64,000 nucleotides of DNA from Guillardia theta CCMP2712 (Eukaryota; Protista; Cryptophyta): positions 575,407 through 639,406 of the forward strand of contig NW_005434657.1 of the NCBI RefSeq assembly GCF_000315625.1, written 5' to 3'. A program made the translations under genes and the position numbers. The notes under the pieces are model-generated. The model searched no databases. It was not told where the DNA came from and saw nothing but the letters and a program-made list of their open reading frames with translations. Shown in pieces: positions 50,088 to 57,026 of this stretch (position 1 is its first letter; each line of letters begins with the position of its first letter).

Positions 50088-52859
50088 AGTCAGATACGGT
50101 AGACGACACGTTTCTGCCCTTTGGTTGCCTCTGTGGACTACAATCATGCAACACCTTAGCATATTTCTTGCTGCTTGGGTGAAAGCGATGGTGATTGATG
50201 TCCATAGAAGTTTAGCCTTGGATCATTCCTTGCAACGGAAGGTTGGTGGTTATGCTCCAATACCTGCACTTCTTTCTTCTACTGCATTTCAAAGGCAGAG
50301 TGTGCAACACGAGGAAACTGGAGGGCTGAATGATTGTAGGCCCCAGTAGAGTACAACTTGCAACTGCGCGCGGCAATGGCTTTCACCCCATCTGACTTGA
50401 AGAATTGAGAGTCTTCACGTTTCACTAGTTTTGGATTCCTGGCAATGACAGTACGTCAAAAAATTATTAAAAACACTTCACTGAACTCAGTGTTAACTTG
50501 ATCATCATCATTAGTGGCAGCCGGGCGTCGCTCGGCCAGTCTTGACCTCGGCGGTTTAAGTCGGACTGAGCCTGCCAGTCACCAGCCGGGCGCGGCTGCC
50601 GCGGCCCGGGCGGCGCCGCCGAGTCACGCCCGAGTCCCGACCCACTGGGGCCGCGTGGCCCAGTGGCACCGCACCGGGCGACCCGGCCGGGCCCTGAGTC
50701 CCGGCGCCGAGTCACACTACGGCACGGTGACTAGCAGTGTCTTGTCACAGGCTCTTCTGAGTCTCCGTTTCAAGTTTGGCCAGTGCGACAGCCTGAGTGT
50801 CAAGAGTCACCGGCAGCGCCGCGGGTGCCTGTACTACCGTACCCGGCCAGTCCGACGACAGGCTCCGAGGCTTCCGAAGTTCCGACGCGCTGAGACTGTT
50901 CGACTAGCATGCCAGTGCTAGTCTGGGTAAAACATCTGTTATAGGCTGCAACAGATGTCCCTACAACAAGCTGTACCACTCACGTTTAAAACTATTGAAA
51001 AACTTTTGTACAATTTTTTTATAGTAAATTTTCATACGACTCAAAAATACATTTTTGAAACTCGGTACGCTTTCAGCTTGCTGGACACGTCGATTACAAG
51101 CAATTATATATCACAACCTACCTGCCTGTGAGATGGATTCACCCTATAACCCCTTGCATGGACCAAAGTGTTTCAATTCACCCTATATTTTTCCAAATCT
51201 CATACCCCCTACCTACTGCATCAAGGACTACCGGTGTAATATCAGACAAATGGACCCCTCTGAGCCCTTTGAAAAAGGTCAGGACAATTTAAGAACCCCC
51301 ATATCTCATGCTCATTTGCTAAACACCCACCCCCTTCAACTATGACCCCCTCAAAGACTGTCCCGCCTAGCTGTGAGGGTGGTCTTTTCCTCTGCAAAGA
51401 CATGGTCGACCACCCTGTCTTCTACCACCACTCTTTCTTACCTCCTTAGGACCCGTGATCCAATCTTTCTATAGGCCCCCGTGCAGGAACCCCTCCAAAG
51501 ATTGCCACTACCCTCATTTGAAAGAATCACCCCCAGAATACGCTTTCAGTACCCCACCTTTTCATAGTTCTACTTGTCCACCCACCACTGATTACCCCTT
51601 TGAATTCCCCCCCACCCCATTCTCTGGTTTATAACTCTATGTTTCCTTCTGTAGGGTAGGGCTTGAAGATGTGAGGGTAGACATACCGCGAGAGAGATGA
51701 AGGGGGGTGGTACTCGAACACCTCTAAGTGTACCGGTACATCTAGATCAAACTATTGGTCAAGTACCCGGTAGTTTCTCGTTTCATCCTCAATTGCCAGC
51801 TCAATGGAGGGGTAGAGACCCGAGCAGGTATATTATAGATGAAAATGGGGTGGGTAGTGGGTCTTGGTTGGGGTTCTTATGATAGCTACAAGCAGGGTAG
51901 GGTAGGGAGACCTGAAGAAGTGTTACCTTGGAAGGGGGTAGGGTTGTGGAGAGGCCAAGGGTAGGGTGGTGGTGGTTGGGGTTAAAGCCCAAGAGAGTCA
52001 AACGGGGTGGGTGATGCTGTAGGTTTGTGGAGTCGCAGAGCTCTTGGGGTGGGGTAGAGGAAGGGTATTTGGGGGGTGAATTGAAATTTGTTGATTACCA
52101 TCGGGGGTAAGGGGTGCGAATCATAGTCTATTGCAGACAATAGGTGGGTAGTGGGTAAGGGGGTACTACAGGGGTGGGTGTACGAAGCAAGGGTGGTGAA
52201 TATCGAAGGAATAGGGGGTGGGGGTGGAATAAGGGGGTGGGGGCTGTCGGGCGAAGTTTCGTTAGCAGAGGGGAAAAAAGAAGAAAAAAGTGAAAAAAAA
52301 CTCACAGAGAAAAACTCAGACAAGCAAATGATAGTTACAAGAAGAGAAAGCAAGAAGAGAGAGAGCAAGAAACGATGAGGTGAATTGGAGCGAAGGGAGG
52401 AGGAAGGAGGTGCAAGTGCAAGAGGAAGGGAATACGGTCAGAGGATTTGCAGTTTCCTTGTCTCCCACTTTGAAACAGAGAGGAGCAGGAAGGAAATTTA
52501 GGTATGGGATGGGAGGTTGGAACGATGATAAGGTTGATAACTAGTAATCTAGCTTGGATTGATTGTTGTCAGCTACAACCCTTGCTCATTGTCTTGTTGT
52601 CTGCAGGCTTCTTGTGGTTCAAGGCTGAGGAACCTGCACCGAGTGCCCCGCAGCTTCCAGTCATGTTTTTTTGTCTCACCCGTATCTGACTTGACGACTC
52701 GGTCAGGCAGTGAGTTGGACAGCTGAATTACTGTTTTGTGCTTCGGAGGTTCTGGTTGATCTTTTGTTGGGTTGTTGGGGTCAGGGGACAGGAGATGAGG
52801 TCGAGGAACATTTCTGGCAAGTCAAGCTGCTGCATCTTGTCGTGGTGAAACAGTTCTCA

Positions 52860-55800
52860 ATGCTTCTCAAAGGGACCTCTGTTGCCTTTCTTCTCGTTTC
52901 GCTTGTCGCTGTTGTCGCAAACTTGATTCCTTCGGAGTCACTGGATTTGCAGCATGCCAGAAGCGAAAGCAAGGACTCCTTGTCTTTCATGGGCCCTCGA
53001 CCGCTGCATGACACGTACATGAGCTTGCTTTGTACTTTGATGCAATAGTCTTGACTATAGTTGCAGGGCTGTGGTGATTCTGAACACGATTGATGGAGGA
53101 ATTTTTGCTCTTGATGCCTCTACAGGAGCATTGAGGTGGACCAAGTCATCGGGGGAAGCAGTTGCACGAGCATCTCCGAGCTTTGGATATCAGGATAATG
53201 CGAATACAGACGGAGAATCAGAGGCAGTCGGGAACCAAGGTGCTGCTGGAGGAAAAGAAACCGTCTCAAGTGAAGGGGAGGATGCCAGTTCGTCGGAGAA
53301 CAAAACGTATGGGTCGGAGTTGTTCCATCAGAATCCTATGGACGCAAATTGGAAGTTTCAGCAGGAAGAAGAGTCTGACTTTGACATCATCCCGCTCTAT
53401 GCACCGGGAGGTGGCTTGCTCACAGTGTCGAATGGCGTGATGGAGCCCTTCGGGTTGCGTGCAAATGAAATAGTCGATCAGTCTCCGTTTGTTGACAACG
53501 GTGTGGTGGTGGTTGGCAGCAAGAGCACCAAGTTGTATGCTATAGATCCTGAGACAGGTCAGACCTCATGGACGCATTTCGACAAAGTGGAGGATGAGCA
53601 ATGCAATAGCGCAAACCCCGATGCAGACACACTGATAATAACTCGATCTGAATACAGCTTGAAGGTCAGAAACGCTAAGACTGGTGCGCATAGTTGGAAT
53701 GTTTCTATCGCCGAATTTCGAGCCCACGGTCCACATTCGAAGCATGATCACTTCAAAGGTGAGAGCATCTGCTATCTGTGCGTGAGGACTGTAACGGACA
53801 CTTCGTGTCGTTGCAGGTGTTCAACTTCCTGTGCTCGTCAGTGGCAGCAGAGTGGGTGGAAAAGAAATTCAGTGTTATGACTCGCGGTCAGGAGAACTCC
53901 TTTGGATTTACAGCCTCCCTTCTACTGCGATCTGTGCGCATGTATGGGAGATGCAGCATGCATTGGAGTTGCCTCTTTACGCGGACGAGGACGTCCTGAT
54001 GAGAAGCCCAGGAGGGTTGAAAGTAGGAAGGCATGGAGGAGCGCTGTTTGCAAGAGTGACTCCTCCACCGATGATTCCACTCCTTGTTGCAGAGAGTGTT
54101 GAAAATACAGCGAAAGATCGCTACGGTCTCGAGCCGCCAAGGGTTGGTGGTTTGATGCCATCCGATCCAGCAAGAGGAAGTGAAGTCATCTCGTTGCAGG
54201 ATTCTCTCGCTGAAAAGAACGAGCAAGGGATATTTGTCACTGGAGCTCTTGTGCGGATGAGCAGCGATCTGTCTGAACCTGCAGCCAATCCTTGCAGGAA
54301 AGGCTCCAAGGACTATCCGCAATGCCTTGTGGGTTCATATGCAGTGCGAGAAGACGTTCGTGAGATGCTGAACTATGGAATGAAGCGGATTGACCGTCCG
54401 CCACAAGATGTCGAAACGAAATGGGATGAGCGTTTGGATCCCAGATTTGGAGCTCAAGGCATTCTGTCCGGGTCTGAATCTGTTTTCTTGGCGAGCCCGC
54501 GACGCCTGGGCTATTCTGAATTCTCAATCTTCATTGCTGCCGTTGGCCTCGTGTGGCTCGGATGGGTGTTGAGAAACGTCTTCGATCGGTCCCCGTATCC
54601 TAGAGAATCGGATGTTTCCAACAGCGACCTCCGTGACATGTGTCCTCTCGACGAGGTTCCGCTCAATGGGGGAGGAGAGAATGCTCTTTCCAAGGCCACC
54701 ACTGTCGGGGATTTTCCTGCGGCCGAGACCGAGAGCGATGCCTCCGCTGCATTGAAGTCCATGAGTAACCAGGACAGCTCAGAGGAGGAGGAGGAGGATT
54801 TCGACTCCGAGCCCTTCAACTCCAGCGCGGACGTGGTTCGCACTTCCTCAAGCCAGTCCGCCAAGGCGACTCAGTCCAAGATCTCAGCAGCATCCACTAA
54901 GGCAGCTGCGAGCAACCCTTCGCACAAGCCTAAGCTTTTCATCCCCACGTTAGGAGGGGACATGCTGCGGTATGGCTGCGCAAGTACGTTCGAGAGTCTT
55001 TGCCAGGACATCGACGATGAGCGAGTGTCAGGCAAGGCTAGAGTGAGAGATCTGTCAAGAGAAACCTCCGACGAAGACAGCTCTTGGGACGAGTCGAGGC
55101 TTAGAAACAACAGCTGGGACGATGACGATAGGAGGCAGCGAAGCATCAGCCTGGGCTCGAAGTGGAGTGTGCAGAAGGATCTTGATGAAGTGATGAGGTC
55201 CGAGTACTCCAAGGCGACCAAGACGGCCAGTGCTCCCAACAGCCCGAAGATTCCTCCTGCAAGCCCAGGTTTCTTTCGGCAGAACCAGGAGTCTCGATAC
55301 ACCACCGACTTCGAGGAGCTTGGCAAGATCGGCAGAGGAGCGTTTGGATGCGTATTCCGTGTGAGGCAGCGCCTGGACGAGCGAGAGTACGCGGTGAAGA
55401 AGATCCGACTGGACAAGGACGAGAAGAGCGCAGATAACCAGCGGATCATGCGAGAAGTTCGTTGCTTCTCCATCTTGAGCGACCACCCCAAGATCGTGCG
55501 TTACTACGGGACGTGGCAGGAGACGGAGATGCCGAGCCCCAAGGACAAGTCGCTCGGCGACAGCGGGTCGTTGGCTGACACGACGTGGGACGCGTCTTCC
55601 AATCTGTTTGGAGAAGAATCGGATATGACCAAGATGTCTTGCTGCGAGGAGCCCGTGAACTGGCTCTACATCCAGATGGAGCTGTGCAACACTTCGTTGC
55701 GGCAGCTGCTCAACTCGGAGAGGTGGGAGGTGAACCTGGAGGTGGTGCGGAGGTACCTGAGGGATGTGACGGAAGGGCTCACGCACATTCACTCGCTGCA

Positions 55801-56554
55801 GTACATCCATCGGGACATCAAGCCTGACAACATCTTCATCGTCAACAATGTGGCGAAACTCGGCGACTTCGGGCTGAGCTGCAAGACCAACTCAGACCTG
55901 GTCGACATTGCCGCTGAATCCTCGCTCGGGATTGTGCACGAGGACGAGGAAGGTGCGGGGGGCGAGGAGCTGACCAGAGCCTGCGGGACGAGGATGTACT
56001 TCAGTCCTGAGCTGGAGCACAGCGGGATCTACAACGAGATGGTGGACATGTACGCGCTGGGGATTGTGACGTTCGAGATGCTTCACAGTTTCAAGACGGG
56101 GATGGAGAGGATCAAAGTGATAGAGAAGCTCAAGAGCTCGATGTGCTCCCCTGCCGCCTCTGCCTTCGCTGCCATGCCCATGGACTCCGTGTTTGGTCCC
56201 TTGACGAGGCGACGGAGGGAGTGGAAGGACGCCAACGTCAGCGAGGCGATCGCCAAGATCGCGCTTCCGCAGGAGCTGTTCGACCTGCAGAAGGACTATG
56301 AGTTTGAGTTCCTCCTCATCCTCCGACTGCTGGGCGAGAAGCCGAGGACGAGGATGACGGCCAAGCACATGTCGGACCTCCTCCGGATGAAGGTGCAGGA
56401 GGCTGAGCACGCAGACAAGTTCCCTTGGGCTGACGCGCATCTGCGGCTGGAGAAGACAACGTCAATGTCCCCCAAGCACGTGGCATCTGTGGGGGACCTG
56501 CGGAGTCTGAGCAAGTCGGAGCGAGGGACGCGAGTACAGACGTCATGGAGCTGA
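52860..56554 (+). CDS. PERK-like transmembrane eIF2-alpha kinase (signal peptide, IRE1/PERK-type luminal domain, TM, eIF2AK kinase with insert), 3 exons
   Basis: MLLKGTSVAFLLVSLVAVVA; VILNTIDGGIFALDASTGALRW; VDQSPF..VGSKSTKLYAIDPETG; TM FSIFIAAVGLVWLGWVL; SRYTTDFEELGKIGRGAFG, YAVKKIRL, HPKIVRYY, LYIQMELC, HRDIKPDNIF, DFG, GTRMYFSPE, DMYALG, TGMER. Confidence 0.9.
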
Positions 56555-57026
56555 CGAGGAGGAGGAGCCTCGTGTGATTGTAGGGAGTTGCTTCCTGGTG
56601 TGCTTCTAGTGTAAATACGACACTTGTTCTAGTGACCCTCCCTTGTCTTGTCTGCCCTTCCCCCTCCTGGAGGTAGCGCAACGTGCAATACGCTCACACA
56701 ACTACTTGCGCTTATAGAACGTTTTCTATCGTGTAGCATGCATGCTCTTAGAGTAGGTGCCTCCTCCTTCAGAGTCTCCTCCTCCAGAGCCTCCTCCTGC
56801 TCCTCTCTCCTTTCATTCACCGATCTCTTCTCCATCTCCATACCTGTTCGGCCTGTCGTTTGCCGCACAAGCTAACACCACAAGAAGCTCGTCTGAATTC
56901 ATTTGCCCGATGAGTGACAATTTTCGTGATGCTCCCTTCAGATATTCAAACTTTCGAGAGAAATTTGAACTTTCAAACGAAAAGAATCAGTTTCAAAAAC
57001 AGAATTGACTAGTAGTAGCTAGGGGC

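Follow-up and report, generated by a model that had tools for sequence, protein, structure and literature searches.

The unfolded protein response (UPR) of the endoplasmic reticulum (ER) has a translational arm, and its animal sensor is PERK (EIF2AK3). One review calls PERK metazoan-only (PMC3359775), and the archetypal architecture of the protein has been described as animal (PMC10512342). PERK-like ER kinases are nevertheless established in apicomplexans and trypanosomatids; Toxoplasma TgIF2K-A and Leishmania K2 are reported to be ER-resident and stress-responsive (PMC13076163). Here we describe a gene with the complete PERK design in a free-living alga, the cryptophyte Guillardia theta CCMP2712. 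It occupies positions 52860-56554 of a 64,000-nucleotide stretch of contig C17 (the window) and encodes a protein that is probably a PERK-like stress sensor. The existence of the gene is not new: GenBank already names it 'eIF-2alpha kinase 3 PEK/PERK, ER-targeted', though with a defective protein model. A preliminary description of this DNA had stated that PERK is usually treated as an animal-lineage sensor. Given the GenBank name and the published parasite kinases, the gene is less novel than that description supposed. Full-text searches outside subscription journals and books gave no paper on PERK in cryptophytes, oomycetes or other algae.

How does the Guillardia protein compare with the systems already described? 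With animal PERK (Branchiostoma P0246, Strongylocentrotus P0255, Palaemon P0141) it shares a predicted signal peptide, a luminal domain of the predicted IRE1/PERK fold, one transmembrane helix and a catalytic domain of the eIF2-alpha kinase (eIF2AK) type, with an N-lobe insert, the helix-G motif (T)xMER and no RNase domain. It differs from animal PERK in several respects. Its N-lobe insert is 52 amino acids long, against 230-280 in animals; its lumen carries an acidic insert of 77 amino acids and a cryptophyte-specific C-terminal half; its cytosolic linker is long and acidic. The luminal domains of the two are about 15-21% identical, and the Guillardia kinase groups elsewhere in maximum-likelihood (ML) trees.

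With IRE1 (human alpha and beta, yeast Ire1 and Guillardia's own copy on contig C31) the protein shares the predicted lumen fold and the type-I topology, and human IRE1-alpha is the best match of its lumen domain in the Protein Data Bank (PDB) by both sequence and structure. Unlike IRE1, it has a kinase of the eIF2AK family and no KEN/RNase domain, and its mRNA ends about 80 nt past the stop codon. GCN2 (EIF2AK4) is the closest relative of its kinase domain by score and by tree. Unlike GCN2, the Guillardia protein has no RWD, pseudokinase or HisRS-like domain in Pfam; it is predicted to be membrane-anchored with a lumen domain, and the genome encodes a separate GCN2. The parasite PERK-like kinases (Toxoplasma TgIF2K-A, Plasmodium PK4, Leishmania/Trypanosoma K2), compared here by description only, are likewise non-animal, membrane-anchored eIF2-alpha kinases. 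To our knowledge their lumen parts, unlike that of Guillardia, are not reported to resemble IRE1/PERK lumen domains. Finally, a set of oomycete eIF2AK-like proteins has a signal peptide, a lumen part that matches a PERK profile, a helix and an eIF2AK kinase with an insert. Their kinases form a separate clade, however, and their lumen identity to Guillardia is only about 17%.

The gene model is verified by transcripts. We aligned transcriptome contigs from three independent studies to positions 52700-56700, and in each study one contig of 3.9-4.3 kb spans the whole gene. Each of these contigs has exactly two joints, with introns of 52 nt and 58 nt removed, and leaves exon 3 unspliced to 56632-56635. 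Because the contigs span both joints, lumen and kinase are encoded by one spliced mRNA. A poly(A) run follows 56635 on the X2 contig; the X1 and X4 contigs stop at 56632. The poly(A) site lies so close behind the stop codon that there is no downstream RNase exon. In a genome-wide scan for the KEN/RNase domain (Pfam Ribonuc_2-5A, PF06479), no match fell on contig C17, and the only matches were on C31 and C559.

From the ATG at 52860 to the end of the stop codon at 56554, the exons read in frame and yield 1194 amino acids. From N to C terminus, the product consists of a signal peptide, a luminal domain, one transmembrane helix, an acidic linker and an eIF2-alpha-kinase-type catalytic domain. Pfam recognizes a PQQ-type domain (PQQ_2, E 1.5e-11) in the luminal part and Pkinase (E 7e-43) in the cytosolic part, and nothing else; a scan of the cytosolic linker (amino acids 535-773) gave no match. 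The signal peptide and transmembrane calls rest on hydropathy only. So called, an N-terminal signal peptide and a single helix between lumen and kinase give the protein the type-I topology of PERK, a layout shared by the cryptophyte transcript P0416.

These results bear out most of the preliminary description, which had read a full PERK architecture from the letters of the window. Its coordinates were exact, and the motifs it quoted are all present: NTIDGGIFALDASTGALRW, VDQSPF, VGSKSTKLYAIDPETG, ITRSEY, WNVSIAEF, SRYTTDFEE, YAVKKI, LYIQMELC and TGMER. The architecture it proposed (signal peptide, IRE1/PERK lumen, one helix, eIF2AK kinase) corresponds to the three-exon gene seen in the transcripts. 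It had allowed for a spliced RNase exon downstream, for luminal exons not joined to the kinase exon, for a kinase of the IRE1 or another non-eIF2AK family and for a holozoan source. We found instead an mRNA that joins lumen and kinase and ends without an RNase exon, a kinase of eIF2AK type by search, tree and motifs, and a cryptophyte source: where they overlap, the product is 100% identical to the NCBI Guillardia theta CCMP2712 protein P0002.

P0002 itself is 1110 amino acids long. It equals our model minus amino acids 928-1011, because the GenBank model drops 252 nt of exon 3 as a GT..AG intron. The 84 missing residues hold the HRD catalytic loop, the DFG motif and the activation loop. Taken at face value, P0002 implies a catalytically dead pseudokinase, a reading to which we give almost no credence. 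The 252 nt are kept in frame in the transcript contigs of all three studies, which refutes the pseudokinase at the RNA level. Furthermore, a Hanusia phi transcript (P0001, 96% identical) retains the equivalent residues, and in every other cryptophyte relative the segment is present, its HRD and DFG motifs intact. The transcripts and the Hanusia phi sequence thus show that the real protein has a complete kinase core. The public model, which lacks it, needs correction before use.

What kind of domain faces the lumen? In a single-sequence search of solved structures, the luminal part matched the luminal domains of IRE1 (2hz6, E 2e-6) and PERK (4yzy, E 4e-4) amid bacterial BamB-type matches. Taken alone, these hits are weak evidence for kinship with IRE1/PERK. 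We also built a cryptophyte-only luminal profile from three sequences: Guillardia, P0003 and the MMETSP transcript P0416. Against the PDB, it ranked human IRE1-alpha first (42.7 bits, E 4e-10), followed by PERK at about 28.7 bits and IRE1-beta at 28.1 bits, with BamB at 24 bits or less. A hidden Markov model (HMM) of 53 animal PERK lumen regions, a kind of check that the preliminary description had proposed, matched the Guillardia domain at 59.4 bits in two colinear pieces. The same HMM gave 29.8 bits for the lumen exon of Guillardia's own IRE1 and matched prokaryotic PQQ proteins only blade by blade.

A structural model is consistent with these matches. We ran AlphaFold2 (AF2) on a 58-row alignment that included animal PERK lumen domains, and obtained a mean predicted local distance difference test (pLDDT) score of 69.5, with 80-95 in the core. 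Foldseek gave only IRE1 or PERK luminal domains as the best 15 matches of this model (E 1.7e-12 to 1e-6, target-normalised template modelling (TM) score 0.56-0.72), with human IRE1-alpha at the top; after them the list drops to BamB at TM below 0.1. Profile and model together support the prediction that the luminal domain has the IRE1/PERK luminal fold and is not a generic PQQ propeller. The scores of the IRE1 and the PERK structures are similar, so on fold alone neither of the two stands out as the closer one.

Several points weigh against the PERK-like reading of the protein. A first AF2 model, from a 15-row alignment, reached a pLDDT of 44.6 and was discarded as unusable. The 58-row alignment that replaced it is dominated by animal PERK lumen domains, and the likeness of the model to PERK and IRE1 structures depends in part on this choice of sequences. 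Towards its C terminus, the lumen part has a half of about 180 amino acids that is lineage-specific and poorly conserved, with a conserved C..YP.C..G.Y motif; its conservation is confined to cryptophytes. A profile of this half found no solved relative in the PDB, and none was detectable outside cryptophytes. When the lumen domain was the query of a word-index search, the hits were limited to cryptophyte relatives and repetitive PQQ proteins of prokaryotes, and no IRE1 or PERK was returned, which reflects a limit of the tool and not absence. An atlas look-alike search was uninformative, with scores that did not exceed 0.82.

Compared with the sequences of solved structures, the kinase domain matches GCN2 (1.9e-45) and PERK (8.6e-39) best, then PKR and HRI, and no IRE1 is among the 60 matches listed. 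Motif alignment identifies the Gly loop, the YAVKKI lysine, the helix-C Glu, LYIQMELC, HRDIKPDN and DFG. A threonine of the activation loop (ELTRACGT) stands at the position used by PERK and GCN2. Helix G carries FKTGMER, a motif common to eIF2-alpha kinases and used in substrate docking. The N-lobe insert and this docking motif, which together mark eIF2AK catalytic domains, are both present. These features support classifying the kinase, from its sequence, as of the eIF2AK type and not of the IRE1 type.

What might such a protein do? We consider it probable that the gene encodes a type-I ER membrane protein that acts as a PERK-like stress sensor. The signal peptide and the single helix would place the IRE1/PERK-fold domain in the ER lumen. 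There it could sense the load of unfolded proteins, directly or through release of BiP, and then oligomerise. After trans-autophosphorylation in the activation loop (ELTRACGT), the cytosolic kinase domains would phosphorylate Ser51 of eIF2-alpha, and translation initiation would be lowered. The outcome would be a translational UPR arm in an alga, beside a separate IRE1. We infer the ER residence, activating signal, substrate and physiological output of the Guillardia protein from its sequence.

One alternative is a membrane-anchored kinase of the eIF2-alpha family that senses another signal, such as a ligand or metabolite, possibly in another secretory compartment and perhaps with substrates other than eIF2-alpha. 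The precedent comes from trypanosomes, whose membrane-anchored eIF2-alpha kinases, including K2 with its PERK-like topology, reside on endosomal membranes and respond to heme, not to ER stress (PMC13076163). Topology alone is thus no proof of ER stress sensing, and this too counts against our functional assignment. The alternative also draws on the cryptophyte-specific C-terminal half of the lumen part, with its conserved Cys motif and no known relatives, and on the acidic insert, which is not present in IRE1 and PERK structures. However, the folded core appears to be specifically of the IRE1/PERK lumen type, whose sole known role is ER stress sensing. The helix-G docking motif and the activation-loop Thr are kept, and the host eIF2-alpha retains the Ser51 phospho-site motif (LSELSRRRIRS). 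We therefore regard a different signal as unlikely, and a PERK-like ER stress sensor remains our preferred assignment.

Is the Guillardia protein an orthologue of animal PERK? The preliminary description had offered two possibilities: either PERK is older than assumed, or an IRE1 luminal domain fused independently to an eIF2-alpha kinase. As a choice between these two, that interpretation is supported. The kinase trees lean to a separate origin, but approximately unbiased (AU) tests are compatible with a common one.

For careful kinase trees we chose 49 rows from a set of 91. P0034, P0116, P0227, P0096, P0019, P0357, P0133, P0135, P0212, P0214 and P0219 were left out as long or compositionally odd, and others as redundant. 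In the 49-row ML tree the animal PERK, cryptophyte and oomycete groups are each a clade at 100/100. Under both trimming regimes the cryptophyte clade and GCN2 lie together on one side of a branch, with support of 97/94 (387 columns) and 96/92 (290 columns), and the animal PERKs lie elsewhere. No rooting of this topology gives the cryptophytes and animal PERK as exclusive sisters. The oomycete clade is strongly supported and joins neither the cryptophytes nor GCN2.

Similarity searches agree with the trees on the distance from animal PERK. As reference we used one truncated shrimp PERK (P0141, Palaemon), the single PERK that came from a word-index search with its length window set for animal PERK; it was the query of an exhaustive library search. 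Its best 150 matches all score at least 219 bits; the six checked by name are animal, two of them labelled EIF2AK3. The Guillardia protein scores 128.7 bits, against 158-181 bits for GCN2 and HRI. Because the kinase domain sits beside GCN2 and not animal PERK, we lean, with a little better than even confidence, towards the view that an eIF2-alpha kinase and a lumen domain of the IRE1/PERK type were joined separately, and hold this more likely than orthology.

The competing explanation is that the protein is a true orthologue of animal PERK with the same function. According to this explanation, the fusion arose once, in an ancestor common to cryptophytes, stramenopiles and animals, and plants, fungi and many protists have since lost it. 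Domain order is alike in animals, cryptophytes and oomycetes, and the animal PERK lumen HMM scores the Guillardia domain well above Guillardia's IRE1. The tree tests also speak for orthology and against a separate joining. Forcing cryptophytes and animal PERK into one clade lowers the log-likelihood by 4.3 and is not rejected by the AU test (p 0.35); nor is a single clade of cryptophytes, oomycetes and animal PERK (p 0.33). With the 91-row set, the tree constrained to unite cryptophytes and animal PERK has a log-likelihood 18 units above that of a quick free tree. The lumen-domain tree gives no help to a separate joining either. It is saturated, a four-branch star with 2-5 changes per site and a central branch at 58/5. 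It contains a single IRE1 (Guillardia's own, from an intron-rich gene), and we draw nothing from it.

Orthology must be set against the careful trees and the shrimp PERK scores. In addition, the cryptophyte lumen profile places human IRE1-alpha 14 bits above vertebrate PERK, and a single ancient fusion would need many independent losses. We consider orthology possible but doubtful, and a separate joining remains the origin that we favour. Two more recent origins were also considered. A recent transfer from animals is rejected as unsupported, since animal PERKs form an exclusive clade at 100/100. Nor is there support for recent copying of the lumen domain from the cryptophyte's own IRE1: each of the two domains is as distant from the other as from lumen domains of other organisms.

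Similar proteins extend beyond Guillardia. Cryptophyte orthologues are found in Hanusia phi, in Teleaulax amphioxeia and as P0416 (1468 amino acids, with its own signal peptide). Proteins with the lumen-transmembrane-kinase layout at 50-64% identity come from metagenomes and named cryptophytes. Judged by predicted topology and a weaker lumen match, oomycetes are a second non-animal lineage with the PERK layout. Their proteins (P0080, P0087, P0091, P0107, P0118, P0119 and P0120, from Phytophthora, Peronosclerospora, Albugo and relatives) are about 1400 amino acids long. They begin with a signal peptide and a lumen part of some 450 amino acids, followed near residue 500 by a transmembrane helix and then by an eIF2AK-type kinase with an insert. 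The animal PERK lumen HMM matches six of the seven at 31-44 bits in two colinear pieces; Albugo P0107 gives 14.9 bits in one piece. Most of these oomycete proteins are annotated only as hypothetical or unnamed. A third group (P0212, P0214 and P0219, metagenomic, from an AT-rich protist) has a signal peptide, a lumen part of about 340 amino acids, a transmembrane helix and an eIF2AK kinase; its match to the PERK lumen HMM is weak, at 8-14 bits.

These findings are of moderate interest for the evolution of the UPR. They add a free-living alga with a complete, RNA-supported PERK design, including a lumen domain of the predicted IRE1/PERK fold. Cryptophytes in general share this design, and oomycetes do as well, judging from topology and a weaker match of the lumen part. 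Tentatively, one may ask whether the PERK design is no animal invention but goes back to a common ancestor of animals, cryptophytes and stramenopiles. In that case the UPR of an early eukaryote would have combined IRE1 and translational arms, with losses in plants, fungi and many protists later. An ancient fusion would push the origin of the translational arm deep into the past of eukaryotes, whereas a convergent one would clearly exemplify a sensor-effector solution that evolved more than once. Every protein bound for the cryptophyte plastid enters the ER lumen first. An ER-load sensor that throttles translation could, we speculate, thus matter for plastid biogenesis.

The coordinates of the gene and its parts are collected in Table 1. 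Two short upstream open reading frames (ORFs) in the transcribed leader, just before the ATG, hint at translational control of the sensor itself.

Table 1. Features of the PERK-like gene of Guillardia theta; positions are those of the window
Feature	Position	Strand	Evidence or remark
Whole gene, three exons, coding start to stop	52860-56554	+	Contig C17, Guillardia theta CCMP2712
5' leader	52663-52848	+	Transcript contigs begin at least 100-450 nt upstream of 52700
Upstream ORFs in leader	52663-52689 (8 codons), 52795-52848 (17 codons)	+	In the transcribed leader
Exon 1: start codon, predicted signal peptide (amino acids 1-27, MLLKGTSVAFLLVSLVAVVANLIPSES), beginning of lumen part	52860-53014	+	Transcript joint 53014/53067, three studies
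Intron 1, 52 nt, GT..AG	53015-53066	+	Transcript joint
Exon 2: N-terminal half of luminal sensor domain, including acidic insert	53067-53758	+	Pfam PQQ_2, solved-structure matches
Disordered acidic insert, amino acids 80-156, inside exon 2	53149-53379	+	AF2 pLDDT below 50
Intron 2, 58 nt, GT..AG	53759-53816	+	Transcript joint (reported as 53757-53814 with 'cut +2'), frame checked
Exon 3, whole; no intron removed in mRNA	53817-56554	+	Transcript contigs
Exon 3, first part: remainder of luminal domain; folded core to about amino acid 337 (53980), then the lineage-specific, poorly conserved stretch	53817-54520	+	AF2, Foldseek, cryptophyte alignment
Single predicted transmembrane helix (FSIFIAAVGLVWLGWVL), amino acids 518-534	54521-54571	+	Read from sequence; aligns with hydrophobic segment of cryptophyte relatives
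Cytosolic Ser/Asp/Glu-rich linker, amino acids 535-773	54572-55288	+	Read from sequence; no Pfam match
eIF2-alpha-kinase-type protein kinase domain, amino acids 775-1138	55292-56383	+	Pfam Pkinase, motif alignment
Kinase landmark: YAVKKI Lys	55388-55405	+	
Kinase landmark: N-lobe insert	55517-55660	+	
Kinase landmark: HRD	55808-55831	+	
Kinase landmark: DFG	55865-55873	+	
Kinase landmark: activation-loop ELTRACGT	55967-55990	+	
Kinase landmark: helix-G FKTGMER	56090-56110	+	
Stretch dropped by GenBank model as GT..AG intron, 252 nt, amino acids 928-1011	55753-56004	+	Three unspliced transcript contigs
C-terminal tail, stop, short 3' untranslated region to poly(A) site	56384-56635	+	Transcript ends

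The PERK-like gene is single-copy in the Guillardia genome. IRE1 is a gene of its own on C31, where exons for a lumen domain, a transmembrane helix, a kinase and KEN are all present, and a fragment lies on C559. At the C31 locus (309300-314600, L005) the kinase/KEN part is split into many small exons. The C559 sequence (L004, L006) is a second, different IRE1 kinase/KEN copy on a 4-kb contig with N gaps, and may be a paralogue or an unplaced allele. The kinase gene at C72:324965-327604 is GCN2, because a HisRS-like anticodon-binding domain (an HGTP_anticodon2 match) adjoins the kinase. At least two further eIF2AK-like genes lie at C5:1208724-1209191 and C46:470109-470615; the tree puts the C5 gene among HRI-like and unplaced kinases.

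Two observations concern the relatives in public databases. The called proteins of metagenomic P0005, P0007, P0008, P0009 and P0013 all start at the equivalent of the Guillardia exon 3 start (MEIPLLVTS...). The shared start hints that cryptophytes have kept the position of the second intron and that the metagenomic models were shortened by prokaryote-style gene calling. In addition, P0402 (MGB1592831.1) bears the title 'MAG: protein kinase domain-containing protein, partial [Promethearchaeia archaeon]' and shares a 90%-identity cluster with the cryptophyte PERK-like protein P0003. It is probably a cryptophyte contig that was binned into the metagenome-assembled genome (MAG) of an Asgard archaeon.

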